Below are positions 7,611 to 32,570 of a stretch of DNA of 32,570 bases, piece by piece. Location: positions 1 through 32,570 of the forward strand of contig NIVC01004536.1 of the NCBI GenBank assembly GCA_002269645.1, written 5' to 3'. Both the position numbers and the translations under genes were made by a program. Positions within the stretch are counted from its first letter, which is position 1, and every line of letters begins with the position of its first letter. The notes beneath the pieces were generated by a model. That model was not told where the DNA came from. It saw only the letters and a list, made by a program, of their open reading frames with translations, and did not search any database. Source of the stretch: Macrostomum lignano (lineage: Eukaryota).

Positions 7611-7787
<177 letters not shown>

Positions 7788-9066: not shown

Positions 9067-9194
9067 GCACGGGTATTAGACTTATTTCTATACTAGTGGT
9101 TCTTTGAAAAAAATATCATCACACGTAACTCTGAAATATCACCTAAAGATGCATCACTTGGAATTTGAGGAGTCTGAATTCGTGGATATGACTA

Positions 9195-11348: not shown

Positions 11349-11359
11349 ATTTGATCGAT

Positions 11360-11365
11360 AATAAA
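11360..11365 (+). terminator. Candidate polyadenylation signal of the 4TM gene
   Basis: AATAAA 12 nt after the predicted stop. Confidence 0.4.
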
Positions 11366-12029: not shown

Positions 12030-13358
12030 ATGGCTGTCGAAAGCATGAAGCTACTTGCAATATTGCTTCTGTTCTGTTCGATCCTCGCAACGGAATGCAT
12101 CGCCAAGCGGAGAGACTATCAAGCCGAGCTGTTCAAATACTTGAAGAACAACATTACTGACTACAGTCCGAAACTGCGACCTACGCTCGACCCAGACCAG
12201 GAGGTGGAAGTACACGTCATCGCCTCGCCAAGAATGATTGTATCCGTGGACAGCGCCAAGCAGAGCATGACAATAGCTGGCATGTTTTTTGCCAGCTGGT
12301 ACGAGGAGCGACTGGTCTGGGACCCCCAGCTGTTCGGAAATGTCACAATGATGGACTGGGACAGCAACCAGCTCTGGCTCCCGGTCATAATCGTCTACAA
12401 CGGCATGGGAGACAATCAACTACTCAGTCCTCAGTTTCCGCCGTACATCACTTCCGTGCAGTCCAATTTGTCTGTGGTATCGACAACCTGGAGACAGGAG
12501 TGGGAGTTCTCTTGCGAGTTTAATATGACCCGCTTCCCTCTGGACCGTCACATCTGCGACATGGAGCTGTTCATGAATGCCCGCGCATTGGACAAAATCG
12601 TCCCGAGAAAAGGCTTATTATTGGCAAACTCATCGTTTGAATACAACGAAGGCGCGGCTTTTGCTCGTAACAGCGAATGGCGGGTGCTGAACCTCAGCAC
12701 ATTCATACGGTACAACGACTTCAAAATGTTCGAAAATCTGCCGCCAGTGAAAATGCCGACCTTTGTGATGCGACTGGAGATCGAGCGAGTGTCCACTTAC
12801 TACATGCTCAACGTGGTGGCTCCCCTAATGCTGCTCACGCTGCTCCAGGTGCTCGTCTTCTTCGTGCCAGTCGAGTCTGGAGAGAAGCTGGGCTTCGGCA
12901 TCACCATCACGCTGAGCTACACGGTGTTCCTGCTGCTGCTGGACGGCCTGCTGCCCAAGTCGCAGTCGATGCCGGCCGTGGCGTCGTTCATCACGGCGGC
13001 CATGGTGCTGTCGACGTCGTCTCTGCTGCTGACGTCGGTGGCGATTCGGTTCCACTTCGCTGCGGAGTCTCAGCCGATGCCGTCGTGTCTCCGGGTCGTG
13101 TTCGTGAGCTGCCTGGGCCGCGTGATGCTGTGCGGTGAGAGGCGAGGCGGCAGCAGGACGGCACCGGAGGGAGACCTCGATGATTCTGCTGTGAACAAAC
13201 CGAGCCGTGACGATGTTAGGAACGGAGATACGTCCGGAGAGCCGAGGCGCTCGGAGTGGCAGGTTGCAGAGGTCGCCGTGGAGCGGCTGCTGATCCTCCT
13301 AGGCTGTCCGGTCACTTTGGCCATCACGTTTTGTTTCCTTATTTTTCCGTTTCTTTGA
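12030..13358 (+). CDS. Cys-loop ligand-gated ion channel subunit A1 (nAChR-like, non-alpha), intronless, intact 442 aa
   Basis: Signal peptide; LRP, WxExRLxW, WLPVIIVYNG; Cys-loop CEFNMTRFPLDRHIC (C-X13-C, 12513-12557); M1-M2 linker PVESGEK; M2 LGFGITITLSYTVFLLL; M3; WQVAEVAVERL plus M4; no vicinal Cys in loop C. Confidence 0.95.
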   Translation: MAVESMKLLAILLLFCSILATECIAKRRDYQAELFKYLKNNITDYSPKLRPTLDPDQEVEVHVIASPRMIVSVDSAKQSMTIAGMFFASWYEERLVWDPQLFGNVTMMDWDSNQLWLPVIIVYNGMGDNQLLSPQFPPYITSVQSNLSVVSTTWRQEWEFSCEFNMTRFPLDRHICDMELFMNARALDKIVPRKGLLLANSSFEYNEGAAFARNSEWRVLNLSTFIRYNDFKMFENLPPVKMPTFVMRLEIERVSTYYMLNVVAPLMLLTLLQVLVFFVPVESGEKLGFGITITLSYTVFLLLLDGLLPKSQSMPAVASFITAAMVLSTSSLLLTSVAIRFHFAAESQPMPSCLRVVFVSCLGRVMLCGERRGGSRTAPEGDLDDSAVNKPSRDDVRNGDTSGEPRRSEWQVAEVAVERLLILLGCPVTLAITFCFLIFPFL

Positions 13359-13488
13359 AAAAACATTCGGTGGCACCTTCACGGAGATGGGTTTTCTGAT
13401 GGGTTAAAAATTCTCGTGTCTGACGAGAGTTTCGATATCTAAGCACCAAATTAACTTTAAAGATGATACGAAAACATTTTAATAGTAT

Positions 13489-13494
13489 AATAAA
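13489..13494 (+). terminator. Candidate polyadenylation signal for A1 (paralog at 26657-26662)
   Basis: AATAAA ~130 nt after the stop, kept in both copies. Confidence 0.4.
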
Positions 13495-13831
13495 GTCGGT
13501 TACTAATATATAGTTGCACTGAGTGAGGTGAAGAGTAAGTATCACGCTTCGACGTCACTAGTAAATTTTTTGGCGAACTGAATGTATACATGTATGCGGA
13601 CACTGTACTAAAAAATTATAATTACTCTTTTCTACGTCAAGTTTTTCTTTGGTAAGACCCTCTTGGCACAGCGCAAAAAGCTTAAAAAGATCAGAATAAA
13701 CAACTTTTCTATGCATTGCCGCTATCCAATAAGATTCTTTTAAAGTTTTTGATTGAAGATTGTCAAAAAACGCATGCTGCTTCAGGTGTTATTTATAATA
13801 TAAAGTAGTACAATCATATAATGATAGATAA

Positions 13832-14106
13832 CACCTGCCCTAATGGGCAGATTTGCAACCGACAGCTCAGCCGCAGCTATTGCGTGTCGCATCTGAAGGC
13901 TGCGTACGGCTGTTCAGTCCGAGGACTGGGGGGGGGGTTCATACACACCCTCAATTACCCCCAGCTAATGCTGGTACAAATTTTACAGCTGGGTGAACCG
14001 AAGCGTGTCAGTGTCTTGCTCGAGGACACAAATTGTTCCAAGAGGGTCGAGAATCGAACCCCCGACCTTCAGTCGTGAGTCCGACGCTCTGAACCACTAG
14101 GCTGAG
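13832..14106 (-). mobile_element. tRNA-derived SINE (copy 1) with a CORE-like central segment
   Basis: Minus strand: A-box-like AGCCTAGTGGTT, B-box GGTTCGATTCTC, then TGTGTCCTCGAGCAAGACACT...CACCCAGCTGTAAAAT resembling CORE-type SINE domains; no 5' acceptor stem. Confidence 0.75.
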
Positions 14107-15054
14107 ATTTAACTACATCCAATCAATAAGATCCAGTTACAGATGACGCAAGTGCAGGAATAGGTTCCGTGGGAATCGTGGCTCAGTAATTGCAAGTCTG
14201 AAAACGGCGCAGTAATTATTTATGCGAAACATTTTTGAAGGGACTGCGTTTGCGGAAAACTCTATTCGAATGAGATCACGCATGGGTTTCATCATAATAT
14301 TCATACCTTGGTTCATCTCATATACATTGTGGAAAAATATTGGCAATATTCGCGTCGACGGCATATTGGTAATATTCTAAGTTACGCGTCCTAAAGCGCG
14401 TCTGCTGCCCCTTGAGGATCAAGGGAAAGACTGAGCACTACCGTGACTTATTGATATGTAATGTTTAAGGGTCTTTGACCTTAACTATGTATATAAGCTA
14501 GGACACAATGGATCAATGGTACAAGCTAAAATTAAATTGGGCATTAGTTATTATTATACGCTATCGTATCTCAGATGAATCACGTGTAAGTTCTTAGTTT
14601 GCGGCCGATTAGAAACTTATAGCTACATTTAGTCATTCTACATTAGATGTCCACACGCTCCTCGAGCGAGCTTTATCCAGAGGCAAAGATCAGCAGAGGA
14701 GCTGCGTAGAATCCGCAAATATCAGTCATACCTGGCAAAGTCAATTTAGAAAATGAATCGCAAATAATACTAATTTTCTGATGAGACGAAAGTCACACAA
14801 TGAGATATACCTGGCTCAGTGCTGCATCAGATTAATTACGGGATACTCAGTGACTGCAATTCACAGATGCTCGTAGCAACTAAATAGGCAGACTATGCAA
14901 ACTTCAGAATTTGATAGCCTACTGCAGTGTCAACATGTAAAACGCATTTACGCTTGTATAGCTCAAAGGCTCGGGTTCAATAGGATCTGGGGATTTTATT
15001 GTCCAAGCTTAGCACGCTGCTCATCATTGAGACGGCTAACTCAACTACATCCAC

Positions 15055-16353
15055 GTGCCACAGTTCAGCCTTACCCGCTTCTGTTTGGTCTTCAGCGCCA
15101 TCGCTAGTGTTCAGGTGGCTCAGGCTAGAGACTTTGAAGCGGAATTGCTCGATTACTTGAAGACTAACAACTCTCGGTATAGCCGTACGCTCAGGCCGAA
15201 ACTAGATCCACATCAGGAGGAGCTCGGTGCTTGTCTGCTGAAAATTCTGGACGTAGACAGCGCCAAGCAGAGCGTCACCATAGCCGCAACTGTCTACGCG
15301 ATGTGGTTTGATGAACGCCTCGTCTGGGACCCGACCCAGTTTGGGAACATCACAATATTGGAATGGGACAACCAGAAAATCTGGTTTCCTCCAATCGTTA
15401 TTCTGAATGGTCTCGGCGACAATCAGCTGCTGAAGCCGGAGTTTCCATCATTTTTGGCCTCGATGTCATCGAACAAGACATTGGTGTCGACTATTTGGCG
15501 ACCAGATTTCGAGTTCACCTGCCAATTAAGCATGTACCGATTTCCAATGGATCGACACGTATGCAGTTTTAGTTTGTATATGGAGGACCAGGCTCAGCTA
15601 TACAAAAGTATAGTTCCAAGCAAGAAATTTTTGTGGAATGCGGAGAATGAGCAAGATGTGGAGTTAAATGAACTCGGTGCGCATAAAAACAGCAGCGAGT
15701 GGCGACTGCTAAGTTTGAGTACTTCGGTAGAATATGGACTTGTCAACTTTTTTAAGAATTCACCACTGATGCTAATACCAGCCTACAATATGCAAATGGA
15801 AATCGAGCGAGTGTCCACTTACTACATGCTCAACGTGGTGACTCCACTACTGCTGCTCACGCTGCTCCAAGTGCTTGTCTTCTTCGTGCCAGTCGAGTCT
15901 GGAGAGAAGCTGGGCTTCGGCATCACCATCATGCTGAGCTACACGGTGTTCCTGCTGCTGCTGGACGGCCTGCTGCCCAAGTCGCAGTCGATGCCGGCCG
16001 TGGCGTCGTTCATCACGGCGGCCATGGTGCTGTCGACGTCTTCTCTGCTGCTGACGTCGGTGTCGATTCGGTTCCACTTTGCTGCGGAGTCTCAGCCGAT
16101 GCCGTCGTGTCTCCGGGTCGTGTTCGTGAGCTGCCTGGGCCGCGTGATGCTGTGCGGTGAGCGGCGAGGCGGCAGCAGGACGGCGCCGGAGGGAGACGCC
16201 GATGACTCCGTGGTGAGCAAGGCGAGCGACGTCGGTGAAAGGCGCTCGGAGTGGCAGGTCGCAGCGGTCGCCGTGGAGCGGCTGATGATTTTCTTGGGCT
16301 GTCCTGCCGCAGTGGCCATTGTGGTTGCATTTGTCATTGTTCCATCCTGTTAA
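15055..16353 (+). CDS. Cys-loop channel subunit B1, intronless, open frame but GTG in place of ATG and a net 3-codon deletion in the N-terminal domain (possible pseudogene)
   Basis: Cys-loop CQLSMYRFPMDRHVC, PVESGEK, 4 TM; B2 has ATG at the same position; in-frame TAA at 15037-15039 excludes an upstream ATG. Confidence 0.85.
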   Translation: MPQFSLTRFCLVFSAIASVQVAQARDFEAELLDYLKTNNSRYSRTLRPKLDPHQEELGACLLKILDVDSAKQSVTIAATVYAMWFDERLVWDPTQFGNITILEWDNQKIWFPPIVILNGLGDNQLLKPEFPSFLASMSSNKTLVSTIWRPDFEFTCQLSMYRFPMDRHVCSFSLYMEDQAQLYKSIVPSKKFLWNAENEQDVELNELGAHKNSSEWRLLSLSTSVEYGLVNFFKNSPLMLIPAYNMQMEIERVSTYYMLNVVTPLLLLTLLQVLVFFVPVESGEKLGFGITIMLSYTVFLLLLDGLLPKSQSMPAVASFITAAMVLSTSSLLLTSVSIRFHFAAESQPMPSCLRVVFVSCLGRVMLCGERRGGSRTAPEGDADDSVVSKASDVGERRSEWQVAAVAVERLMIFLGCPAAVAIVVAFVIVPSC

Positions 16354-16901
16354 TTTTACTCGGCTAGACAAAAAATCGAAGCACAGTGATAGAGCGCTCT
16401 GTAGTAATATGAACTTATTAAACGTAATTTAAAAAAGCAGTCTCTTTTGTCTAATAGTTATTCTCTTTTACGTTCTCTAAGAAATGCCTCGCTGCTGAAG
16501 CCTTGGGGTCCAAAATTAAAGGTCACATTTGCTTAAACTATTTACACTAATGGGCAATGCTTAAAATACAAAATCCAACTTTAAAATCGAAGTGGTGTCA
16601 ATCGTTCTAAATACACAAATTTTATTCTTTTTGTGAATCTTTGTGGACTAATTTCTTTCTTAACCTTTTCTGCAACAAAGGGCATGATACTCCAAAACTG
16701 AGTCTATTTTGTACCTTATGTATGGAAAAGCTTTCACACAGAACTTACGGATTCAGAACGGTGAGTTGTATACAACTGTCACAACTTGAGACATCGCAAA
16801 ATCTGAAGCGATCGCTGAGTTGACTTCTGCAACTTTAACTTTTCGACTGCACCTTCGACTGCACCCGCATACTGCCGTCCAGGGCCATGAAAGGCACAGA
16901 G

Positions 16902-17280
16902 TGAGGACCAAGGGTTTATTAGGCTGAGGACCATGTGTTCATTGGGCTGAAGACCATGGGTTCATTGGGCTGAGGACCACGTGTTCATTGGGCTGAAGAC
17001 CAAGGGTTCATAGGGCTGAAGACTATGGGTTCATTGGGCTGAAGACCATGGGTACATTGGGCTGAGGACCACGTGTTCATTGGGCTGAGGACCATGGGTA
17101 CATTGGGCTGAGGACCACGTGTTCATTGGGCTGAGGACCATGGGTACATTGGGCTGAGGACCACGTGTTCATTGGGCTGAGGACCATGGGTACATTGGGC
17201 TGAGGACCACGTGTTCATTGGGCTGAAGACCAAGGGTTCACTGGTTTGAGGACCATGACTTCATGAGAACTGAGGACCAA
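16902..17280. repeat. 23-bp minisatellite, alternating GGGCTGAGGACCATGGGTACATT / GGGCTGAGGACCACGTGTTCATT (46-bp dimer)
   Basis: Strict alternation over ~17036-17220. Confidence 0.95.
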
Positions 17281-18009
17281 TAATGTGGTAGCGTGTGGCG
17301 TGTGTCTGGGGTGTTTGCATGGTGCTAGTTTGGTTTGGGTGTGTTATCGAATTATCGATTGTTCGTCCGAAGCTTCTAACGTTTTCGGCTTTGATAAATC
17401 TAAAGACAAAATATGTCAATAAATAAACTTTATCTGACATTTTCCAATATGCGAAATTTCCTCCACTCAATTGGCAGTGAAATTTGATAGCGAAGCTGCT
17501 ATTCTAGTATGATGCTTCGAATTTGGACGAAGCAATTGCTTCTCTTTCGACACCTAGATTTCGCCTCGAATAGTAAATTAATTTCACAAAAATATCAAAG
17601 CAGTCACGAACTATAGAGTAAACACCTGAGCCATTTTTACACAGACATGTATAGATGCATGGACACCTGAGGTATAGGCCGGTGGGATATTTTCGAATCT
17701 CTTTTAGGGTTATTATTGTCATCTGGATCGGTATCTGCCAGTCAAGGTCAACTGATTATAGGCTTTTAGCCTGTTAGTCAGTTCTGCAAAGCCTGTTAGA
17801 CAGTCTGTAGAGATCTCTAAAACATAGTATAAGCAGACTACTAGAAGTGGAAAGATAAAATATTTAAAAGACAAATTTTACATGCTTGGGTTCATACTCA
17901 ATTTTTAATAGTAATCACGAAAACAGTAAATGTCTATTCCACTATGCGAAAAACCGGTTCTCAACATCTAATTTTAGAACTTCCAAATATGGTAAATGTT
18001 GACCTGAAT

Positions 18010-19790
18010 GCTCTTTGCCGCCTCTCCTTTGATATCAATTACCGGAGGAGGGGCACAGAGGAAGGCATTCATGCCTTCAAAAGGAGTACAGGGTGGAGCG
18101 CCCATAGTCATGCGTCAGGCTCTGCCCTGGATTTTGTAGAGATTACCGAAATTCCAAAATTGCCGAAAGTGGGCTAGATGACCGCTAGCCCACACGAGGC
18201 TGGCGTAACAGATTGAGGTGCGCATAATGGCAGTGTAAATCCACCACAGTTTTCTGGGGGTGAGCCCTAGGTGGTTCCTACGGCGCGCCTGATCTGAGCC
18301 AGGACAGCCAGGGCTTTTTTGGCTTTGGTTTGGATGTGCGGAGTCCAGTTAAGCCTGTGGTCCAGAGTGAGGCCCAGGCCGCGGACGTGCTTCTCCATGG
18401 AAATATCCTTTCCATAGAGGGCGAGGGGCTTAATGGTCCAGAGCAGTTTGTTGGTAAACATGACCGCTGTGGTTTTCGACTCTGAGAGTCTAAGGCCACA
18501 TTGGTTTGCCCAACGCTCCGCTCGTCCCAGAAAGCCCTGCAGAAGATCTCTGAGGTATCAAACGAGGGACCCTCGCATATGGTGGTCACATTATAGGCAT
18601 AGCCCACCTTGAGAATGGTGTCATGGAGATCACTGCAAAGCAACTCATCCATGCGTCCTTTCTGGACAGGCGCCGTTAGAGAGCTGCTGTTCAGGTGGAC
18701 CACGACAGTGCGGTTCCGGATCATGAACATGATCCACCGGACAAGGGGAGGGTGCGTGGCCCTGGAGTCCAGGGCTCTGCAAAAGGCCTCGAAGATGACA
18801 TTGTCAAAGGCCCCCTCAATCTCCAGGAAAAGCGAGAGGGCAAAGCCGCTGCCAAGAACGGCCCTCTTCAGGAAGTCAACGATGACATGGAGGGCACTCT
18901 CAGTGGACCTGCCCGCGCGGAAGGCGTGCTGGTTCTGCGAGAGTGGGAAGCGCTTTAGCTCGATTGAAAGTAAGCGCCAAAGCACCAGTCTTTCGAGGAG
19001 CTTAAGGCAGAAGGAGGTAAGGCTGATAGGCCTGAAGGCCTTCACCTATTCGTAGTCGCAATATCCAGGCTTGGGGATAAAGACCACCCGGGCCTCTTTC
19101 CACGCAACTGGTACATAGCCCAGCTCCACACAAGCTCGGAGGAGACGACAGAGCAGGTCCAGGAAGCGGTGGTTTTTCACTGCCTCGTGCAAGAACGCTT
19201 AGTAGATGCCATCGGGCCCAGGCGCCTTGAACGGGTTGAAGGACCTTGTCGCTCTAGCAATGCGGTCTTTGGTGATCATAGACTTTGCTTGGCCTTGCCC
19301 TCCCACGGTGTGGTCAGGCGGGCCCTGCTGAGTCGGAGATTTAGGGAAGAAACTGTTGAGCATGAGCTCTAGAGTCTCTTCAGAGCTCTCTGTGACCGAG
19401 CCATCAGGTCTCTTCACAACAGAGAGTTTAGAAAAACGGTCGTTCGTGAGTGCCTTTACCACGTGGGCTACGGGGCGAGAGCCCTCAAGCCCTTCGCAAT
19501 ATTGGCGTCACTTGGCCGCCTTGGCCCTTCTGACTTGGCCCTTAAACTCGTGGATAGCACGGGTATAGGCCTCTCTATCAGATGGGTCTTTGGTTTTGAA
19601 CGCTCGTCTTTGGAGGGTCCTGGCTCGGCGCCGAAGGCTCTGGGTTTCACCAGGGAGCAGATTTCTTGCCTTTGAAGGCCTTAAGAGGGCAGGCTGCCTC
19701 ATAGGCAGTGGTGATCGCCCCGTCCAGGGGGGAGGCGTGATCATCCACAACCCGGCAGTCAGAGAGGTCACTGGGGACTGCTAGATCGGA
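18010..19790 (-). mobile_element. Degenerate non-LTR retrotransposon ORF2 relic (LOA/R1-like reverse transcriptase)
   Basis: FNPFKAPGPDGIY, WKEARVVFIPKPG, FRPISLTSFCLKLLERL, QHAFRAGRSTESALH, LFLEIEGAFDNV, YADD decayed to YAYN, KAKKALAVLAQIRRAVG, LWWIYTAIMR, TPFEGMNAFL; stops and frameshifts; clade call from motif style only. Confidence 0.92.
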
Positions 19791-19822
19791 ACCCAACCAT
19801 TCGATGGATGGAGTTGCCCTAG

Positions 19823-19962
19823 CTCCAGAGGCTTATTCTCTGGCGGCTGCTTTCATGCGAGCTGACAGCAATGCCCCTCAGCAATAATCAGCACGCCTTC
19901 CGTACCGAGAGAACGACTGACAGCGCCCTGCATGCGATAGTCGAGAAGATTGAACGGGCGGT
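19823..19962 (+). mobile_element. LOA/R1-like LINE relic, 5' piece (interrupted by a DNA transposon)
   Basis: LQRLILWRLLSCELTAMPLSNNQHAFRTERTTDSALHAIVEKIERAV; continues in frame at 22802. Confidence 0.88.
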
Positions 19963-21215
19963 CCCGGTGTAAAAAGTAGGGTCAAGCGGACGTCTTTCGG
20001 ACCCCGACGGGTCCTCATTGGGGTTGCGTCTGCTTTGAGAAAAAAATGTCTAGTTTTTACATTAAATCACTCTAAAGGGCCATATTTCAGTTACTTCATG
20101 GCTAAAAAGTTTGTCGACTTTGTACTTATGTGGGTCCGTTATTCGTCCCCAATGGTCCGTTTAGATCCGATCGACTCCTAAAAAATGCAAGTTTTTTCTA
20201 ACGCCGTATAAATGTCCCTTTTGCTGTGATTTCGGTTAGTTTTGGGTTTATTTTCAAGTATTCACCTTTGTGTACTGACAACTAGCACTTTTTGACAGTC
20301 CGATTTAAAAAGATACGTCAGATGAAAAATGACCCTTGGTCATTCTCCAGTTGCATAATTTACTACTTGTGATAGTAGAAAAGTTGGCGAAGTTTCTTTT
20401 CAAACTTTTCAAACTTTTCAAACTTTAGTCTTTTGTGTTTTGGGGCTTCTAGATTGCAGTCGCTTGACATTAGCCTTTCAGTTGAAAACAAATTAATCTT
20501 TTTGTGTGAATGTTATATTTTCGTTTTTCATAGACTAATTTTTACGCTATCTTTTAAAGCTACATTTTGGTTGGGGTGTCGCGTAAAATACGTATCAACA
20601 GTAAGTCTGATCATGCCTTACTACTTTCGACAGTAGGGTTCACCAGAAAGGACTATACCCTGAGTGATAACTGCTTTTTATTAAAAATACCAAATTACCT
20701 GGTTATTAATTGCGTACAATCACTTTGATTATATAAATATTTTGCAGTGCCAGAGCTTTTGAATTTGGAAAAGAAGTTGGTCAAATTTTCAGTGCGCACC
20801 TTATCCGTGTGAATAAGAGTTTAGCAACGTTGGGCGTGGGTGGGTTAAAACTCAAGAATTTCGGGAAAACAGAAAGTGAATGAGCTCAATGTAGCACTGA
20901 GCCGCCGAAGGGCTGGCGCCAGATTTTGGTGGACCAGGGCCCCGAAGCCCTAACTAAGATCAGTAGCGCAACGAGAAATTTTTAGGGGGGGGATTCTGGA
21001 GGGTAAAGCCCGGGAGGAAGCGGAGGGGTGTCAGGGTTGCTTTCACAAGGTCGAAATTTCATATCCTCGAAAATACATATCTCACATAGCACCCTATCCT
21101 TTCTTATCTCCCATTATCTTCTTATTTTTACCATCTCTTATCTCCTCGCTTCTCTCGTTTCTCTCCTCTCCATTTTCTCTACTCTCAGCTCCTTTCCTAG
21201 AGAAATTTCATATAT

Positions 21216-21601
21216 TGTTTGGGAGCCTGCTGTTTGGGAGGGGACCGCTTGCTGTTTGGGAGGGGACCGCTTGCTGTTTGGGAGGGGACCGCTTGCTGTT
21301 TGGGAGGGGACCGCTTGCTGTTTGGGAGGGAACCGCTTGCTGTTTGGGAGGGGACCGCTTGCTGTTTGGGAGCCTGCTGTTTGGGAGCCTGCTGTTTGGG
21401 AGGGGACCGCTTGCTGTTTGGGAGCCTGCTGTTTGGGAGGGGACCGCTTGCTGTTTGGGAGCTTGCTGTTTGGGACCCTGCTGTTTGGGAGGGGACCGCT
21501 TGCTGTTTGGGAGCTTGCTGTTTGGGACCCTGCTGTTTGGGAGGGGACCGCTTGCTGTTTGGGAGCTTGCTGTTTGGGAGGGGACCGCTTGCTGTTTGGG
21601 A
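21216..21601. repeat. Compound minisatellite of 22-bp (TGTTTGGGAGGGGACCGCTTGC) and 15-bp (TGTTTGGGAGCCTGC) units inside the DNA transposon
   Basis: Seen directly. Confidence 0.95.
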
Positions 21602-21749
21602 ACTTAGAAAGAATTAGAAATTAAAGAATACGTAAAATACGCATTTAGAGAGATTTAGAGTTATATAGCGACAGGTACAGGGAGGCAGATAAACATGTTC
21701 CAGGTCCTCTCTAACCCTGTGTGCAACCCACCCAAACCTACATTTACAG

Positions 21750-21930
21750 AGGACGACCCTCTGAGCGCGATGTAGAAGTCGCCGTTATTCAGGTGCTGAA
21801 ACACGCTGCCGAGAGGGAGGCCGCACGCCAACGTAGAAAATCCCTACGTGAAGAGCACCACGAAATGCCAGGAGACACCAGCGAGGCGCAGCAAGGGATG
21901 AGAAAGCGGGCCAGAATTGACTCTGATTGA
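21750..21930 (+). other. Exon-like ORF remnant inside the DNA transposon (GRPSERDVEVAVIQVLKHAAEREAARQRRK...), possible accessory-gene C-terminus
   Basis: Preceded by acceptor-like CATTTACAG; helical amphipathic plus basic pattern resembling DUF4806/BEN-like C-termini (from memory, unverified). Confidence 0.3.
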
Positions 21931-22011
21931 GATGTCGAGGAGTAACTGTTTATTTCTTTTCACCACAAAAACATTAATTTTCTGGATACGCACCAGAATA
22001 TCCTATGTATT

Positions 22012-22370
22012 AAAATTCAGATAGAGATAATTAGGATTCAGGTAAGAGATAATTAGGATTTAGGTAAGAGATAATTAGGATTTAGGTAATAGATTAGGAT
22101 TCAGATAGAGAGAATTCAGGTAAGAAATTAGGATTCAGGTAAGAGTAAGGTTAGAGATTAGGATTCAGGTAAGAGATAATTAGGATTTAGGTAATAGATT
22201 AGGATTCAGATAAGAGATTAGAATTCAGGTAAGAGATTAGAATTCAGGTAAGAGATTAGGATTCAGGTAAGAGATAATTGGGGTTCAGGAGATAAGAATT
22301 AGAATTTAGATAAGAGGTTATTAGGATTTAGGTATTAGATCAATAGAATTCGGGTATTTGATAATTAGGA
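22012..22370. repeat. Degenerate ~20-22-bp tandem repeat (TTAGGATTCAGGTAAGAGATAA) inside the DNA transposon
   Basis: Seen directly. Confidence 0.9.
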
Positions 22371-22801
22371 CTATTTCGGCCACTGCTGCCAAACCTGCTG
22401 CTCAACGACCCTGCCCCGTTCTGCTAATGTTGCGCTAAGTGATGTTATATATTTCATACTTTCTATTTTACCCGTAAACTATATGTAACTACGTAAACAG
22501 GAAATAAATGATAACTAAAATGCATTTTTCATTTCGCTCTTCAAAGTCTTCGTATACGTGATATAACTTTAACAAACTGAAACACTGCACGCAATGCAAC
22601 CTACTGAAAGTAGTGTGTAAATACTGGGGTCGAATAAAAGATTGCAAGTAGGAGTCATGAGGACCCCTACTGAACAGGGTCCGGTCTGCGTCTGAATCAG
22701 TCCTACATCAGCGTCTGGCGGACTCGATTTCAGTAGGACATAAGCACCCTACCCAGACGGCCCAAAACTGACGCCCGATGGACGGCTTTTTTTACACCGG
22801 G

Positions 22802-23836
22802 GTACTGGGTGACGGTTACGCCCTGGCTCTTTTTCTCGACATTGTTGGCGCCTTCGACAACGTTATCTTTGAAGCGTTTCAGAGGACCCTTCAAAACCAC
22901 AAAGCTCACGCTACCCTCATACGGTGGATCATGTACATGATCTCTAACCGTACGGTCACTGCCCAACTTCTCGGGCAAACTACCTCCGCCAGAGTCTGTA
23001 AGGGTGGACCCCAAGGCGGAGTCCTCAGCCCGACGCTCTGGAATCTGGTCATGGACGCTCTTCTGGGTGACTCCCGACCTGATCCCGTTTTCAAAGTCGG
23101 GTATGCTGACGACGTCACTGCCATTGTGGCAGGGCCGTCCCCCAGCACGCTCAGGGATCTGATGCAGAGCTTTATCCGCAAAGCAGAATCCTGGGCCAAT
23201 GACAACGATCTGGAACTCTCTGAGCCCAAAACCGTTGCCATTATGTTCACCAGCAGAATACGCTGAAACATACGACCTCTGCAGTTATAGGCAGAGATAT
23301 TGCCTTCGCGCACCAGACCAGATGTCTCGGGGTCATAATTGACCACCGGCTCAACTGGTCCTTTCACGTGAAAGCAAAAGCCAAGCGTGCCTCAACCATC
23401 CTGGCCCAGCTCCGACGAGCACTTGGCACCTCTTGGGGTCTATCCCCAAAGCGACTTTGGTGGATCTACAATTCCGTAGTTAGACCTGCCATTACGTACG
23501 CCTCGGTTGTCTGGGTTAGCGCTACCCAGGTCAAAAGTCATGCAGATTTGCTCAACGCAATCCAGGGCAGAGCGTGTAGGCTTATCTGCAACGCCACCAG
23601 GTCCACGCCCTTTGCCGGCATGGGGGCCTTCCTTAATCTACCGCCTCTCGACCTCTTCGTCAGGGGTGAGGCGGCTAGAACGACGCGGCGTTTACTTGAT
23701 GCCGGTGTCAAATTCCTTTGCATGAGGGCACCTGCTAAGCGGAACCTCGTCCCGCATAGCGACCTGTGCCTCAACATTCTTAACGAGTGTCAGGCCAATC
23801 GCGTCTTCACCGATGGCATTGCCTCAACGCTCAACA
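22802..23836 (+). mobile_element. LOA/R1-like LINE relic, 3' piece (RT domains 3-7 and thumb), 3'-truncated
   Basis: VLGDGYALALFLDIVGAFDNV, KGGPQGGVLSPTLWNLVMD, VGYADDV, KTVAIMFT, WGLSPKRLWWIYNSVVRPAITYASVVW, TPFAGMGAFLNLPPLDLFVRGEA; internal stops and frameshift. Confidence 0.93.
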
Positions 23837-23837
23837 T

Positions 23838-24510
23838 ATTGCTAAAAACTTTGCTTTCCTGACCCTCAACCGCAGTGGCTGACTCTGGACATATTCGTCA
23901 CAGCTGGCTGGTCCCTGCCATCCTGCGATTCTGCCAGAAAGTCGGATTTTAGCCATAAGCGATAGTGTATTCAGTACACCCCTGTACGCCAATTAGCACT
24001 GCGCCTTAGTGCAGCCTTTTCAAGCCTCCAAATTTCATCAGCACGTCGATCACACGCGGCTGCATCAGCTCTGACTTCTTTAGTCACTGGCCTTCATCCA
24101 GGCGGAGCTTCTGAACCTTCAACAGGTGGCACCAGGTGAGTTTGAGAAGTTGCACAACAAAAAGTTAGCCCGTGCTCTTGAATTTCGTGTGCCTGCGTTG
24201 ATCCGTTCAAGCGCATTAAAAAATTGTCAGAGGGGGGGTAAATTCCCCCCTTGGTAGTTCTACTGATAATAGTAGCAAGTAGAGTGTAGTCTCATTAAAT
24301 TTTAATTCAGTTTTAGCTAAGCAACGACCAAACAATTTTCGCAGAGTACTTCAAGCGAGTTGCCTTGCTGTAAAGCTGTTTACAAACCAAATACTTCGTG
24401 GTGATCGGCAAGAAAAATCATCCAATAATCGACGAGATAAACAAAATCAACCTGCTGTCACTGAATAATCGAGGCAAGTCGTTGCTATGGATACAACAGA
24501 ATGCATCTTA
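23838..24510 (+). pseudogene. Relic of the 4TM gene: intron-3 acceptor plus the start of exon 4 (23857-23926) and decayed exon 5
   Basis: 67/70 identity to 10621-10690; exon-5 homolog has an altered acceptor and premature TAA at 24466-24468; exons 1-3 absent. Confidence 0.75.
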
Positions 24511-24946
24511 GGACAGGATGCATATTTAGAACAAATTACTTGAATCGACTTCAAATGTATCACTGCAAAGTAATTTTTTATCAAACTTTGGTAATCACGA
24601 TTTATAGTACCGCATAAACAGCCTACTTGAGTCAACAAATATACTCTGAAGCTTTTAAGCCGTTTATATGCGAGAGGAAACATATTTCGAGGTAAAATAA
24701 CAAAACAGAATAAATTACAATGTCATATAGTTAATTACACAACCGACTCTAAAAATGATAGAGCCAAGTCAATTAGACATGAAAGCTCGTTGAAAAATAC
24801 GCACGAAACTAATAAAAAGATTATTTACATTAATTAATTTCCAAGGCAAACGCACTGTCAGGACAAATCAACCTACGAGTAATCAAACACAGACGCAAAT
24901 GATCCATCAATTTATGAGTTAGCCAATAGCACTAAATGGGATGGCG

Positions 24947-24992
24947 ATTCAATTATTCAATTATTCAATTATTCAATTATTCAATTACTCAA
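24947..24992. repeat. (ATTCAATT)5 plus partial octamer repeat upstream of A2
   Basis: Single copy at the paralogous site 11808-11815. Confidence 0.9.
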
Positions 24993-25198
24993 ACGGGTAT
25001 TTGCTATGCCCCGATAGCAAATAACCACGATTGCTTCCCATGAACACTGCTTAGTTTGGACTATATGCAATCATAAAACGCATACCGGATGCAATATTGT
25101 CTGCTTCTATGCATCCATGTAGCATCCAGAGATTACATATACCGGCATCGAAGCAGTGTATTAGTCGAATTAGAGGCATCTAAGTCGAATCTTTCGCG

Positions 25199-26526
25199 AT
25201 GGCTGTCGAAGGGATGAAGTTGCTTGCAATATTGCTTCTGTTCTGTTCGATCCTGGCAAAGGAATGCCTCGCCAAGCGGAGAGACTATCAAGCCGAGCTG
25301 TTCAAATACTTGAAGAACAACATTACTGACTACAGTCCGAAACTGCGACCTACGCTCGACCCAGACCAGGAGGTAGAAGTACACGTCATCGCCTCACCAG
25401 GAATGATTGTATCCGTGGACAGTGCCAAGCAGAGCATGACAATAGCTGGTATGTTTTTTGCCAGCTGGTACGAGGAGCGACTGGTCTGGGACCCCCGGCT
25501 TTTCGGAAATGTCACCGCGATGGACTGGGACGGCAACCAGCTCTGGTTCCCGGTCATATTTGTCTACAACGGCATGGGAGACAATCAACTACTCAGTCCT
25601 CAGTTTCCGCCGTACATCACTTCCGTGCAGTCCAATTTGTCTGTGGTATCGACAACCTGGAGACAGGAGTGGGAGTTCTCTTGCGAGTTTAATATGACCC
25701 GCTTCCCTCTGGACCGTCACATCTGCGACATGGAGCTGTTCATGAATTCCCGCGAATCGGACAAAATCGTCCTAAGAAAAGGCTTATTATTGGCAAACTC
25801 ATCCTTTGAATACAACGAAGGCGTGGCTTTTGCTCGTAACAGCGAATGGCGGGTGCTGAACCTCAGCACATTCATACGGTACAACGACTTCAAAATGTTC
25901 AAAAATCTGCCGCCAGTGAAAATGCCGAACTTCGTGATGCGACTGGAGATTGAGCGAGTGTCCACTTACTACATGCTCAACGTGGTGACTCCCCTAATGC
26001 TGCTCACGCTGCTCCAGGTGCTCGTCTTCTTCGTGCCCGTCGAGTCTGGAGAGAAGCTGGGCTTCGGCATCACCATCATGCTGAGCTACACGGTGTTCCT
26101 GCTGCTGCTGGACGGCCTGCTGCCCAAGTCGCAGTCGATGCCGGCCGTGGCGTCGTTCATCACGGCGGCCATGGTGCTGTCGACGTCGTCTCTGCTGCTG
26201 ACGTCGGTGTCGATTCGGTTCCACTTCGCTGCGGAGTCTCAGCCGATGCCGTCGTGTCTCCGGGTCGTGTTCGTGAGCTGCCTGGGCCGCGTGATGCTGT
26301 GCGGTGAGCGGCGAGGCGGCAGCAGGACGGCACCGGAGGGAGACCTCGATGATTCTGCTGTGAACAAACCGAGCCGTGACGATGTGAGGACCGGAGAGAC
26401 GTCCGGAGAGCCGAGGCGCTCGGAGTGGCAGGTGCAGAGGTCGCCGTGGAGCGGCTGCTGATCCTCCTAGGCTGTCCGGTCACTTTGGCCATCACGTTTT
26501 GTTTCCTTATTTTTCCGTTTCTTTGA
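25199..26526 (+). pseudogene. Cys-loop channel subunit A2 (paralog of A1) with a 1-nt deletion at ~26433 before M4; pseudogene or consensus error
   Basis: 1328 nt vs 1329 in A1; GGTTGC in A1 is GGTGC here; otherwise an intact frame. Confidence 0.8.
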
Positions 26527-26997
26527 AAAAACATTCGGTGGCACCTTCACGGAGATGGGTTTTCTGATGGGTTAAAAATTCTCGTGTCTGACGAGAGTTT
26601 CGATATCTAAGCACCAAATTAACTTTGAAGATGATACGAAAACATTTTAATAGTATAATAAAGTCGGTTACTAATATATAGTTGCACTGAGTGAGGTGAA
26701 GAGTAAGTATCACGCTTCGACGTCACTAGTAAATTTTTTGGCGAACTGAATGTATACATGTATACGGACACTGTACTAAAAAATTATGATTGCTCTTTTC
26801 TAGGCCAAGTTTTCATTGGTAAGACCCTCTTGGCACAGCGCAAAAAGCTTAAAAAGATCAGAATAAACAACTTTTCTATGCATTGCCGCTATCCAATAAG
26901 ATTCTTTTAAGTTTTCGATTAAAGCTTGTCAAAAAACGCATGCTTGCTTCAGGTGTTATTTATAATATAAAGTAGTACAATCATATAATGATAGATA

Positions 26998-27270
26998 AAC
27001 CTGCCCTAATGGGCAGATTTGCAACCGACAGCTCAGCCGCAGCTATTGCGTGTCGCATCTGAAGGCTGCGTACGGCTGTTCAGTCCGAGGACTGGGGGGG
27101 GGGGTTCATACACACCCTCAATTACCCCCAGCTAATGCTGGCACATTTTACAGCTGGGTGAACTGAAGCGTGTCAGTGTCTTGCTCGAGGACACAAATTG
27201 TTCCAAGAGGGTCGAGAATCGAACCCCAGACCTTTCAGTCGTGAGTCCGACGCTCTGACCACTAGGCTAG
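26998..27270 (-). mobile_element. tRNA-derived SINE (copy 2, duplicated with the block)
   Basis: Near-identical to 13832-14106 at the paralogous position. Confidence 0.75.
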
Positions 27271-28177
27271 ATTTAACTACATCCAATAATAAGACAGTTC
27301 AGATGACGCAAGTGCAGGAAGGTTCCGTGGGAATCGGCCAGAATTGCAAGTCTGAAAACGGCGCAGTATTATTTGATGCAAACATTTTGAAGGGACTGCG
27401 TGCGGAAAACTTATTATAAATCACGCATGGGTTTCATCATATATTCTTTACCTTTTCATCCATATACATGTGAAAAATACTTGCTTGCTGTTATTTATTT
27501 TAAGTTACGCGTCCTAAAGCGCGTCTGCTGCCCCTTGAGGATCAAGGGAAAGACTGAGCACTACCGTGACTTATTGATATGTAATGTTTAAGGGTCTTTG
27601 ACCTTAACTATGTATATAAGCTAGGACACAATGGATCAATGGTACAAGCTAAAATTAAATTGGGCATTAGTTATTATTATACGCTATCGTATCTCAGATG
27701 AATCACATGTAAGTTCTTAGTTTGCGGCCGATTAGAAACTTATAGCTGCATTTAGTCATTCTACATTAGATGTCCACACGCTCCTCGAGCGAGCTTTATC
27801 CAGAGGCAAATATCAGCAGAGGAGCTGCGTAGAATCCGCAAATATCAGTCATACCTGGCAAAGTCAATTTAGAAAATGAATCGCAAATAATACTAATTTT
27901 CTGATGAGACGAAAGTCACACAATGAGATATACCTGGCTCAGTGCTGCATCAGATTAATTACGAGATACTCAGTGACTGCAATTCACAGATGCTCGTAGC
28001 AACTAAATAGGCAGACTATGCAAACTTCAGAATTTGATAGCCTACTGCAGTGTCAACATGTAAAACGCATTTACGCTTGTATAGCTTAAAGGCTCGGGTT
28101 CAACAGGATCTGGGGATTTTATTGTCCAAGCTTAGCACGCTGCTCATCATTGAGACGGCTAACTCAACTACATCCAC

Positions 28178-29477
28178 ATGCCACAGTTCAGCCTTACCCG
28201 CTTCTGTTTGGTCTTCAGCGCCATCGCTAGTGTTCAGGCGGCTCAGGCTAGAGACTTTGAAGCGGAATTGCTCGATTACTTGAAGACTAACAACTCTCGG
28301 CATAGCCGTGCGCTCAGGCCGAAACTAGATCCACATCAGGTGATTGAAGTGTCGCTCGGTGCTTGTCTGCTGAAAATTCTGGACGTAGACAGCGCCAAGC
28401 AGAGGTCACCATAGCCGCAACGGTCTACGCGATGTGGTTTGATGAACGCTTCGTCTGGGACCCGACCCAGTTTGGGAACATCACAATATTGGAATGGGAC
28501 AACCAGAAAATCTGGTTTCCTCCAATCGTTATTCTGAATGGTCTCGGCGACAATCAGCTGCTGAAGCCGGAGTTTCCATCATTTTTGGCCTCGATGTCAT
28601 CGAACAAGACATTGGTGTCGACTATTTGGCGACCAGATTTCGAGTTCACCTGCCAATTAAGCATGTACCGATTTCCAATGGATCGACACGTATGCAATTT
28701 TAGTTTGTATATGGAGGACCAGGCTCAGCTATACAAAAGTATCGTTCCAAGCAAGAAATTTTTGTGGAATGCGGAGAATGAGCAAGATGTGGAGTTAAAT
28801 GAAATTGGTGCGTATAAAAACAGCAGCGAGTGGCGACTGCTAAGTTTGAGTACTTCGGTAGAATATGGACTTGTCAACTTTTTTAAGAATTCACCACTGA
28901 TGCTAATACCAGCCTACAATATGCAAATGGAAATCGAGCGAGTGTCCACTTACTACATGCTACTACTGCACTACTGCTGCTCACGCTGCTCCAGGTGCTC
29001 GTCTTCTTCGTGCCAGTCGAGTCTGGAGAGAAGCTTGGCTTCGGCATCACCATCATGCTGAGCTACACGGTGTTCCTGCTGCTGCTGGACGGCCTGCTGC
29101 CCAAGTCGCAGTCGATGCCGGCCGTGGCGTCGTTCATCACGGCGGCCATGGTGCTGTCGACGTCGTCTCTGCTGCTGACGTCGGTAGCGATTCGGTTCCA
29201 CTTCGCTGCGGAGTCTCAGCCGATGCCGTTGTGTCTCCGGGTCGTGTTCGTGAGCTGCCTGGGCCGCGTGATGCTGTGCGGTGAGCGGCGAGGCGGCAGC
29301 AGGACGGCGCCGGAGGGAGACGCCGATGACTCCGTGGTGAGCAAGGCGAGCGACGTCGGTGAAAGGCGCTCGGAGTGGCAGGTCGCAGCGGTCGCCGTGG
29401 AGCGGCTGATGATTTTCTTGGGCTGTCCTGCCGCAGTGGCCATTGTGGTTGCATTTGTCATTGTTCTATCCTGTTAA
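28178..29477 (+). pseudogene. Cys-loop channel subunit B2 (paralog of B1) with two frameshifts
   Basis: ATG at 28178; missing C at 28404/28405; 14 nt of B1 replaced by 7 nt at 28962-28968 (net -7) at the start of M1. Confidence 0.88.
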
Positions 29478-30034
29478 TTTTAACTCGGCTAGACAAAAAT
29501 CGAAGCACAGTGATAGAGCGCTCTGTAGTAATATGAACTTATTAAACGTAATTTAAAAAAGCAGTCTCTCTTGTCTAATAGTTATTCTCTTTTACGTTCT
29601 CTAAGAAATGCCTCGCTGCTGAAGCCTTGGGGTCCAAAATTAAAGGTCACATTTGCTTAAACTATTTACACTAATGGGCAATGCTTAAAATACAAAATCC
29701 AACTTTAAAATCGACGTGGTCGCATTCGCTCTGAATGCACCAATTTTATCCTTTTTGTGAATCTTTGTGGTCTAATTTATTTTTTAACCTCTTTTGCGAC
29801 TAAGGGCTCGGTACTCCAAAACTGAGGCTGTTTTTACTTTATGTACCGGTATGGAAAAGCTTGAGTTTACACGGCACCTACGGATTCAGAACGGCGAGTT
29901 GGAGACTGTCACCAATTGGGACATCCCAAATCTGAAGCGATCACTGATTTGACTTCTGCAACTTTAACTTTCAGAAACTTTTAGGCTGCACCTTCGTCCC
30001 GCATACTGCCGTCCGGGCTATAAAAGGCACACAG

Positions 30035-30297
30035 TGAGGACCAAGGGTTTATTGGGCTGAGGACCATGGGTTCATGAGAATGAGATCCATGGGTTCAATG
30101 AGCTGAGGACCATGATTTCATGAGACTGAGGACCATGAATTCATGAGACTGAGGACCATGATTTCATGAGACCGAGGACTATGAATTCATGAGACTGAGG
30201 ACCATGATTTCATGAGACTGAGGACCATGATTTCATGAGACTGAAAACAATGGGTTCATTGGGCAGAAGAACAAGGCTTCGTTGTGCTGAAGACCAA
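30035..30297. repeat. 23-bp minisatellite (CATGAGACTGAGGACCATGA[T/A]TT) at the site paralogous to 16902-17280
   Basis: Seen directly; a different monomer variant from copy 1. Confidence 0.93.
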
Positions 30298-31577
30298 TGA
30301 TGTCGTAGCGTGGGCATGTGTCGCGTTTCTGGGGCGTTTGGTGCTGGTATGAGGTTTCGTTTGATTGGTATTTAGTTGGCGTGGGGGCTGCTCTCTTATT
30401 ACTTGCAGCTTGCTTCACTTGCATCTCGCCACGCCAGTTGGGTGAGAGTCTATTTATAACCTTTCTATCGCTTTCTATCGCTAACAGAGACAGTGACAGT
30501 TCATTAGGTTAGAGACCATGATTTTATTTGTGCTGAGGATCATGGCTTCATGAGACTGGGGATCATGGTGTGGTGGCGTGTGTCGCTGTTTGCATATACA
30601 AAATGTCCTCTACTCGTTGACAGCGAACCTCGACAGCAAAACTGCTATTCCAGTGTGCCGCTTAGAATTTCGGACGAAACAATTGCATCTAGGTCGTATT
30701 TTGGCACCCCGAATAGCTTTTTGCTTTTCTTCCAGCTTTCCAATCTAAAGCAATAATAAATCCACAGTCACAGGCTCAGAGCGATAGCTAATGCATCCGC
30801 AAACACTGGATGAAAGCAAATTATTGTCATAAAAATCTCGAAGTAGTCACTGACCTAGAGTAAATACCTGAGCTATGTTTACACAGATATGTAAACACGA
30901 ACACTTGAGTTCAGACCAATGGAATATCTTTGAATCATTTTTTAGGATAAATATAGCTATCTGGATTGATATCCGCCAGTCAAAGCCAATGGATTATATG
31001 GCTCTGGTTCCAGTGCTGTCCGTTCAAACAAAACCCATCACAGGCAGGCTGGTCGCAAAGAAATTTGTTCTACACAGTGACCTGGCGCTGTTTGCCCTGT
31101 GCATTAGCCTAATTGCATTTCGGAGGAGTGTATTTACAAATAGGACTATAGAAACGTATGATTATTAGTGTCCAAATACCAAGTTTTCGGACAAAGCAAA
31201 GTTTGTCACGGTATAGATTGGAGTGCTTTCAGTTCCAGGCGTTCAATAAAGTCTTTTTCAGGAAAATCGAGTGTTTAGTTTATTTCTAATCCAGTTATTA
31301 ATGTTTGTGATTAAGTGAATAATTAATCTGTCAAATATCTTGTGTGTCCTCTAACGAATGTTTATCAATCTGCCGTGTTACTCACATTGCCAGTAGTTTA
31401 TCCAATTACCGCATTAGCAGTTTCATGCTGCAGCATAAATCTGATTAGCTTCAGCCAATAACTACTCACCAGGGAAGTGAAAAAGCAGCCGAACTCTAAA
31501 AAAGATGAGCCTGCTCACATAAAACCTGCGATTCACCAACCGGAGTTCACTGCTTACTGGTCTCAAATAAGAGCGAA

Positions 31578-32570
31578 ATGCTGTGTAAAATATTCATTAA
31601 AGCTCTTGCTCTTGTCGCCTTGCTGACCACTGAATATCAGTTAGCAGCAGGTGCTGAAGACTACGAGGCCGAACTGTTGCACTACTTAAGGCACAACATC
31701 ACCGGCTACAGCCCGACTCTCCGACCATTGCTGAATTCAAAGCAGACTGTCTTTGTGTCAGCAGACATTATAATTGGTCAGATAATCTTGGTTGACAGCT
31801 CAAAGCAGAGTGTAACAATTTCCGCAATTATCTCAGCCAGCTGGAGCAACGAGCGGTTAATCTGGGACCCGGCCAAGTTCGGCAACATCACCGTGATGGA
31901 CTGGGACAGCAGTCAGCTCTGGTTCCCTGTTGTGGTCGTCTACAACGGCCTTGGAGACAACCAGCTGCTGAGTCCTCAGCTTCCGACATTCATCACGTCA
32001 GTGTCGCCCAACAGATCTACAGTGTCCACCGGCTGGATCGGGCAGTGGGAGTTCTCCTGCAAGTTTAACATAAATCGGTTTCCGTTCGATCGGCACTCCT
32101 GCGAGATGGAGCTTTGCGAATGACCAGAGCCGCGGTTGCCCAGCACTGTTATAAAGAAAGGGTCATTTCTACTGATGCGCCATCGGAGCCAACGGAGTAC
32201 AACAATAAGGTGCCTATAGGACAATGGCGAATGGAACTTGGTCAACTTGACCACTTATATAAAGAAAATACCCTATGAGGTGCTTAAGGGAGCATCAAAG
32301 GTTAATCTGTCTACGTTGGCTTTGCACATGGAGCTCGAGCGAGTGCCCACTTACTACATTTTGAGCGTAATGACCCCCTGCTGCTGCTCACGCTGCTCCA
32401 GGTGCTCGTCTTCTTCGTTCCCGTTGAGTCTGGAGAGAAGCTGGGCTTCGGCATCACAATCATGCTGAGCTACACGGTGTTTCTGCTGCTGCTGGACGGC
32501 CTGCTGCCCAAGTCGCAGTCGATGCCGGCCGTGGCGTCGTTCATCACGGCGGCCATGGTGCTGTCGACGT
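31578..32570 (+). CDS. Cys-loop channel subunit C, intronless, 3'-truncated by the window; apparent stops/frameshifts at 32110-32380 are probably consensus errors
   Basis: Signal peptide, DYEAELLHYL, LRP, WSNERLIWDP, WFPVVVVYNG, Cys-loop CKFNINRFPFDRHSC, then PVESGEKLGFGITIMLSYTVFLLLLDG after restoring single bases. Confidence 0.85.

Follow-up and report, generated by a model that had tools for sequence, protein, structure and literature searches.

The window examined here is positions 1 to 32,570 of contig NIVC01004536.1, analysed over this whole length. From position 12030 to its end, it contains five copies of one family of nicotinic acetylcholine receptor (nAChR)-like Cys-loop subunit genes, all on the same strand and within 20 kb, in the order A1-B1, a spacer of ~7 kb, A2-B2, and then C. 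Across these genes, a 396-bp tract that includes membrane helices M1 to M3 is nearly identical even at silent sites, whereas the ligand-binding extracellular domains (ECDs) are highly divergent. The tract was very probably made by non-allelic (interlocus) gene conversion among old tandem paralogs, because its silent sites are homogenised, it has two boundaries, its copies are related in a star-like manner against deep ECD lineages, and permutation tests were significant. The exchange acts on pseudogenes too, and the process therefore looks neutral and mechanistic.

A near-identical tract in divergent paralogs

Copies of the tract were located by BLASTN of A1 12780-13175 against the window. The search recovered the tracts that a first-pass annotation had placed in A1, B1, A2 and B2, at the same coordinates and with the same number of A1-B1 mismatches (Table 1), and no copy was found in the window beyond those in A1, A2, B1, B2 and C. 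In A1, the tract extends from the last ECD codons (I-E-R) through M1, M2 and M3 to the first ~26 codons of the M3-M4 loop. The copies in A2, B1, B2 and C showed 93-98.5% nucleotide identity, whereas identity in the remaining coding sequence was 40-70%. The A2 copy, with one private change (12782), was the nearest of all copies to the consensus. The same tract had also been claimed for C. It is present there (BLASTN match at 32335-32570, 92.8% identity over 237 nt to the window end), but near-identity starts only at ~32382 (A1 12828/12829), which is ~50 nt further 3' than in A and B; a comparison of C with A over 12780-12831 gave 10 differences at 50 sites.

In 60-nt windows, A-B identity was 40-70% across the ECD, rose to 90-100% from 12770 to ~13130, and then fell. 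Both tract edges had been described as sharp. The bounding A/B mismatches indeed lie where they had been placed, at 12779 on the 5' side and at 13176/13177 on the 3' side, but the 3' flank is of intermediate divergence and not ECD-like, with 71% nucleotide identity, a 43-bp indel, and 88% identity in the 60-nt window from 13250. At the amino acid level, A and B shared 78 of 149 residues from the N-terminal helix to the Cys-loop on realignment (the first-pass figure was 79/149, or ~53%). Identity was lower between the Cys-loop and the tract (27/74), as had been noted, and reached 128/132 within the tract; in M4, 11 of 23 residues were identical. The GC counts given for single lines were exact (41/60 on line 12961, 27/60 on line 12601 and 22/60 on line 15601).

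Silent sites and statistical support

Synonymous (pS) and nonsynonymous (pN) differences are Nei-Gojobori counts for A1 versus B1 unless other copies are named. Over the 221 codons of the ECD, pS was saturated at 0.84-0.86 and pN was 0.32, whereas over the 132 codons of the tract pS was 0.064 and pN was 0.014. The corresponding values for the 3' region were about 0.5 (0.48-0.52) and about 0.2, with a pS of 0.34-0.5 in the flank adjoining the tract. The GC content at third codon positions (GC3) peaked inside the tract, where pS dropped: from 5' to 3' (upstream part, tract, downstream part), GC3 was 0.68, 0.88 and 0.62 in A1, and 0.54-0.55, 0.85 and 0.69 in B1. The 7 synonymous differences at 110 synonymous sites of the tract were compared with the pS of ~0.55 of paralogs in Macrostomum lignano (binomial P ~1e-27). 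Neither protein constraint nor codon bias can be the only cause, as the same codons in M. lignano showed pS values of 0.55-0.64. Furthermore, the M3-M4 loop is unconserved even in the closest relatives; the tract reaches ~26 codons into it, and protein constraint is therefore insufficient. These results bear out the earlier claim that homogenisation of silent sites exceeds what protein constraint explains.

Sawyer-type permutation with 845 polymorphic sites gave longest identical runs of 50-67 sites in the four A-B pairs, compared with a maximum of 26 sites in 10,000 permutations (P <= 1e-4 for all four pairs). The M. lignano paralog pairs M1-M2 and M2-M3, used as controls, were not significant (P ~0.28). 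Separate trees of the ECD and the tract were discordant: the ECDs group as A1+A2 and B1+B2 with deep splits between lineages, and the tract is star-like. The tract is thus a bounded segment of high identity with homogenised silent sites and discordant trees that have statistical support, as is characteristic of a gene-conversion tract, and the ectopic gene conversion proposed in the first-pass annotation was upheld. Chance or protein constraint would fall far short of producing this pattern. A single unequal crossover producing chimeras was also considered and was ruled out, as the tract has a 3' boundary besides the 5' one.

An unconverted array in Macrostomum lignano

The gene for PAA92206.1 is located on the 1.49-Mb contig NIVC01000059.1, in a 21-kb locus (L001); this locus has three tandem paralogs that are intact and intronless, plus a truncated copy. 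This array is like that of the window in that it belongs to the same subfamily (45% amino acid identity), has the same M2 motif (ESGEKLGFGITIMLSYTVFLLLLDG), and is intronless, tandem and on the same strand. It is unlike the window array in that all three copies are intact, GC3 is 0.55-0.78, and no long tract of nucleotide identity is present. Over tract-equivalent codons, the L001 paralogs showed the pS values given above and GC3 values of 0.55, 0.62 and 0.78; over M1-M3 alone, pS was 0.52-0.60 and pN was 0.08-0.14. Nucleotide identity was 82-83% in the M1-M3 core, with exact runs of 29-60 nt, and 50-57% in the ECD, with runs of 11-14 nt. The membrane domain of L001 is strongly conserved as protein, not as DNA. 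Homogenisation is therefore lineage-specific and not a property of the family.

Within L001, paralogs M1 and M3 (7863-9188 and 12783-14105) are identical over a run of 60 nt in the M2 pore helix (permutation P <= 1e-4). The run is the sole hint of exchange there, in a pair whose membrane domain has a pS of 0.52 overall, and it may represent a short conversion tract in M. lignano. These two full-length copies and the truncated one (16333-16674, M3-M4 only) flank the single annotated gene. The record used has no gene call for the three flanking copies, and the L001 array appears under-annotated.

Number and timing of exchanges

Tract distances were 6 sites for A1-A2, 12 for B1-B2, and 9-13 for the A-B pairs, a star-like pattern, whereas ECD identity was 96.4% for A1-A2, 98.2% for B1-B2 and 57% for A-B. 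Only three sites of the tract separate A from B (12824, 12828 and 13163), and two are incompatible with an A/B split, namely 12869, where A2 and C are alike, and 13041, where A1 and B2 are set against A2 and B1. Therefore, the A/B exchange took place just before the duplication of the A-B unit, perhaps with minor exchange later.

The two copies of this 6.1-kb unit showed a p-distance of 0.058 overall and 0.045 in the A-B spacer, and the silent divergence between their ECDs was 0.071 for A and 0.022 for B. Tract pS ranged from 0.03 to 0.13 among all copies, with 0.054-0.073 between A and B copies and 0.08-0.13 between C and the others. Thus, the common origin of the tract copies is about as old as the unit duplication. 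The exchange had been called recurrent, and this term held in part. The later 5' endpoint of C needs a separate event, the intermediate 3' flank is probably the remnant of an older, longer exchange, and sites 12869 and 13041 also agree with repeated exchange, but the narrow range of tract ages fits a burst better than intense ongoing homogenisation. The visible tract arose through a few events that were close together in time. In the middle of the ECD, A and C (12288-12470 versus 31836-32018) showed a pS of 0.49-0.57, compared with 0.75-0.9 elsewhere, and this dip may be an old, partly eroded conversion within the "variable" half. In view of the intermediate 3' flank and this dip, "recurrent" is therefore reasonable over a long time.

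Gene copies and their lesions

The coordinates of genes, duplicated units and tracts are listed in Table 1. Lesions were found in four of the five copies, and A1 was the sole copy without a lesion; it consists of a signal peptide, the ECD with Cys-loop C162-x13-C176, M1-M3, a short loop and M4. B1, which has in-frame stops upstream of its GTG and a 9-bp in-frame deletion at 15220, is probably defective. The 1-bp deletion of A2 lies in a TT run, equivalent to A1 13264; the current open reading frame (ORF) stops at 26461, and M4 is lost. In B2, the 1-bp deletion is in the ECD (B1 15273, AGC context) and the 7-bp deletion is at the start of M1 (B1 15831). C has in-frame stops at 32121 (TGA) and 32217 (TAG) and a 1-bp deletion just before 32375, opposite A1 12821, at the start of M1 and beside a C run. 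The 1-bp indels of A2 and C, being in or beside short homopolymers, could be assembly errors. The 1-bp indel (AGC context) and 7-bp deletion of B2, the two stops of C and the lost ATG of B1 are not errors of the homopolymer type. The sensor half of C has decayed but its pore tract is fresh, and exchange is therefore independent of function.

Table 1. Genes, duplicated units and tract copies in the window
Feature	Coordinates	Strand	Description	Basis
Gene A1	12030..13358	+	intronless nAChR-like Cys-loop subunit, 442 aa, lesion-free	ORF, Pfam, PDB matches
Gene B1	15055..16353	+	432 codons, frame open, start codon GTG where B2 has ATG	
Gene A2	25199..26526	+	duplicate of A1; 1-bp deletion shifts frame before M4	
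Pseudogene B2	28178..29477	+	duplicate of B1; ATG kept; 1-bp and 7-bp deletions	
Pseudogene C	31578..32570	+	third paralog lineage; cut by window end	
Duplicated unit 1	11093..17163	+	A1, spacer, B1; ends in 23-nt minisatellite	
Duplicated unit 2	24267..30296	+	A2, spacer, B2; repeat of unit 1	
Tract in A1	12780..13175	+	396 bp, GC 0.64, GC3 0.88	
Tract in B1	15802..16197	+	11/396 mismatches vs A1, 9 vs A2	
Tract in A2	25949..26344	+	6/396 mismatches vs A1	
Tract in B2	28933..29321	+	389 bp (7-bp deletion), 95.5% identity to A1	
Tract in C	32382..32570	+	near-identity (96-98%) to A and B; 3' end beyond window	
3' flank of A1	13176..13300	+	intermediate divergence; M3-M4 loop and pre-M4 helix	

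Proposed mechanism and alternatives

Repair that depends on homology can start only where there is a stretch of near-identity. Under the favoured explanation, purifying selection would leave the membrane core as the sole segment similar enough for old paralogs to pair, and homology-directed repair would copy a neighbouring paralog as template. Each converted segment would be more prone to the next exchange, and GC-biased repair over repeated events, or a GC-rich donor, would raise GC3. Differential purifying selection alone would be enough to confine conversion to the membrane domain.

Several points weigh against this explanation. The five loci are known from assembled sequence alone, and a contribution of assembly or polishing is possible. 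The view is that of one genome window, which shows neither the donor nor how many exchanges took place nor how large the family is. Seeding on exact runs of 29-60 nt is suggested by analogy with other organisms. GC-biased repair is only compatible with the raised GC3, as the substitutions are unpolarised (outgroup silent sites are saturated); private changes since homogenisation were strong-to-weak in 13 cases versus weak-to-strong in 2, but such a bias is expected in any GC-rich sequence and does not separate the hypotheses. Furthermore, pS between B1 and B2 was higher in the tract (0.063) than in the flanks (0.022 and 0.00), opposite to the A duplicates. This excess is unexplained and of borderline significance, the counts being small (6.8 versus 3 synonymous differences), and it could reflect chance, post-duplication exchange or higher mutation in the GC-rich tract.

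The GC3 of the tract, 0.85-0.88, matches no flank of A, B or C and could equally come from a GC-rich donor outside the window. One or a few patches might then have been transferred from an unseen GC-rich family member elsewhere and spread by duplication, with which the narrow coalescence range of the tract copies and the near-consensus A2 tract also agree. We consider this rather unlikely: A, B and C are three old lineages with their own flanks, so that at least 2-3 transfers would still be needed, C has a different 5' endpoint, and the intermediate 3' layer implies an earlier event. In any case, such transfer is a variant of the gene-conversion explanation and not a true alternative to it. 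The first-pass annotation went further and proposed that conversion keeps one uniform pore and assembly module for interchangeable ligand-binding sensors; on an adaptive reading, selection would favour and maintain this conversion. The tract does match the M1-M3 module closely, the ECDs are very divergent, pN/pS in the tract is low (0.05-0.47), and a similar argument was made for TLR1/TLR6 (PMC2077338). However, the state of the copies in this window speaks against this proposal, which we regard as improbable, although it might hold for family members outside the window. Only A1 is lesion-free; the ATG of B1 is lost, B2 is frameshifted twice, C combines two stops and a frameshift with a fresh tract, and A2 is frameshifted by a 1-bp indel that is a possible assembly error. 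Moreover, ~26 tract codons lie in the non-conserved M3-M4 loop, M4 belongs to the membrane module yet is not homogenised, and the intact M. lignano array, without conversion, keeps its M1-M3 by purifying selection alone. Subunit interfaces in the Cys-loop superfamily involve the ECD too. A broader version, in which the tract is one case of a genome-wide selected "master" M1-M3 module common to many more nAChR-like paralogs, with conversion, possibly from a dedicated GC-rich donor, holding pore and gating properties constant, and with the ECDs as diversifying chemosensors and the broken copies as recent casualties of fast birth and death, is likewise improbable.

An assembly artefact is another candidate: cross-mapping of reads in consensus building or polishing might have homogenised a moderately similar segment, or two haplotypes might have been placed in tandem. 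This would fit the 1-bp indels in the TT run of A2 and next to the C run of C, which look like typical long-read errors, although that of B2 has an AGC context. The second A-B unit might in principle be a haplotig put in the wrong place, and the copies are known from the assembly. Nevertheless, the five tracts differ, each with private substitutions (fewest in A2) and with the 7-bp deletion in B2, and every tract is in frame inside unique divergent flanks. Among the private variants are 12848 and 12854 in B1, and 12890, 13040 and 13084 in B2. Tract divergence also agrees with the independent estimate from the duplicated flanks. Cross-mapping would need a prior identity well above the 64-83% of the unconverted relatives, and A, B and C differ within one unit, so that haplotype collapse cannot make the A/B/C pattern. 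We therefore judge an artefact to be very improbable. Constraint at the nucleotide level (extreme codon bias, RNA structure or an antisense gene) might fix silent sites without exchange, and the tract is indeed GC3-rich and has long antisense ORFs, e.g. 15847-16371 (-), as expected in GC-rich DNA. This idea is effectively refuted, with a probability close to nil, by the pS of 0.52-0.60 in the same codons of the M. lignano paralogs; in addition, near-identity covers the non-conserved loop and persists in pseudogenes. A structured RNA in the tract was ruled out: the Rfam scan gave no RNA family, the tRNA search gave none, and the fold of the tract was no more stable than that of shuffled sequence (z = -0.97). 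Non-allelic gene conversion thus remains the preferred explanation.

Comparison with known systems

Regional gene conversion in the protocadherin variable exons of zebrafish and human was reportedly described by Noonan et al. in 2004. In the clustered protocadherin variable exons of fugu, regional gene conversion occurs and GC3 is raised in the converted part (PMC1852091). The array in the window is like the protocadherins in consisting of same-strand tandem paralogs, each with one large coding exon and a divergent 5' recognition part; the 3' part of the protocadherins, including the membrane-proximal and transmembrane region, is >97-99% identical. In both systems the silent sites of the converted part are homogenised and its GC3 is significantly raised, and in both conversion is lineage-specific, being absent from the coelacanth cluster there and from the M. 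lignano array here. In contrast to the protocadherins, the present genes encode a pentameric ligand-gated channel and not a cadherin, the array is much smaller, most of its copies are broken, and the tract lies inside the gene with a boundary on each side and does not take in the whole 3' end.

TLR1 and TLR6 are likewise tandem receptors in which conversion is limited to the C-terminal, transmembrane and signalling part and the ligand-binding part diverges. In nine mammals the same region was converted independently, which supports a selective explanation there (PMC2077338). Here, unlike TLR1/TLR6, the compared M. lignano array is without conversion and most copies are pseudogenes. Jiao et al. 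(2019; PMC6896357) reported lophotrochozoan expansions of intronless tandem nAChR genes by retroposition and stepwise tandem duplication. These resemble the window array: they are intronless and tandem, their ligand-binding domains vary greatly, many of the subunits are non-alpha, and pseudogenes are frequent, but the family in the window is closest to flatworm (Macrostomum) and not to molluscan sequences. The term "gene conversion" is absent from that paper, and the searchable literature gave no earlier report of a domain-restricted conversion pattern in Cys-loop receptors.

Domain-restricted conversion among tandem receptor paralogs is already well known, and no new mechanism is revealed here. 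The array is a clean and quantifiable example of concerted evolution limited to one domain of a ligand-gated channel family, and it comes with a natural unconverted control array. Trees and orthology calls of expanded invertebrate receptor families will mislead if the membrane domain is included, and short-read assembly or polishing may mishandle such tracts. The case also illustrates that a difference in constraint is enough by itself to keep conversion within one domain, so that adaptive "module" readings call for caution.

Identity of the encoded channels

Each gene is a single frame without introns that encodes a signal peptide, the Cys-loop, M1-M3, a short cytoplasmic loop and M4. A1 and B1 matched Pfam PF02931 (E 7e-25) and PF02932 (E 4e-18), the ligand-binding and membrane domains, and their best PDB matches were nAChR alpha subunits over residues 40-377 (E about 1e-33; 8e-34 for A1). 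With M4 read directly from the sequence, the ECD and the four-helix membrane domain of pentameric channels are both present. The Cys-loop has the form C-x13-C (C162 and C176 in A1, CEFNMTRFPLDRHIC), and both cysteines are invariant in A1, B1 and two M. lignano proteins. M2, SGEKLGFGITI(T/M)LSYTVF, aligns with SGEK...L of nAChR alpha and has a cation-type motif (Glu -1', Leu 9'; positions numbered by our own reading), from which cation selectivity is predicted. The stretch from the Cys-loop to M1 has no vicinal Cys pair in A, B or C, and the tryptophan that ACh-binding alpha subunits have in loop B is absent, "GTWTYDG" of nAChR alpha being aligned with "FMNARALDK". Since the loop-C Cys pair and the loop-B Trp are lacking, the genes are predicted to encode non-alpha, orphan nAChR-like subunits of the cation-channel branch of the Cys-loop superfamily.

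A HMMER search of 1.8 billion representative proteins gave M. lignano proteins as the closest relatives, with 45-48% amino acid identity; other relatives showed <=31% over comparable lengths, apart from two short partial matches at 36% and 43%. A word-index protein search, profile query included, found two relatives only. Scans of public metagenome contigs with a degenerate pattern and an exact 45-mer gave no match to further copies, and the A1 protein and P0001, P0002 and P0003 are not on record in public assemblies.

Repeats and neighbouring sequences

The ~7-kb spacer between the units is made up of minisatellites and reverse-transcriptase fragments. The latter (RVT_1) lie at 18278-19045 (-) and 22778-23266 (+), and this retroelement debris may be younger than the duplication or may have mediated it. 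Minisatellites were found at 863-2050, 2899-3044, 3386-4009, 7612-7786, 16902-17279, 21216-21601, 22015-22370 and 30035-30296; examples are a 21-nt unit x57, a perfect 16-nt unit x9, a 28-nt unit x22 and (AGT)58. Both duplicated units have the 23-nt repeat at their 3' end, and long ORFs over minisatellite arrays are repeat artefacts. A non-coding element of ~200 nt at 4921-5123 has 70-73% identity to 4187-4387 and 15203-15387 of L001, indicating a shared repeat family.

On the plus strand, a high-affinity choline transporter gene (SLC5A7/CHT1-like) has its last two coding exons at 5197-5553 and 5890-6690. By tblastn, these exons showed 50-57% amino acid identity to proteins of nematodes, schistosomes, bivalves and annelids, and the protein search gave values of up to 61%; the best match of one exon had 68% identity over just 53% of the query. 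A gene of the cholinergic synapse thus lies ~5 kb upstream of the nAChR-like array.

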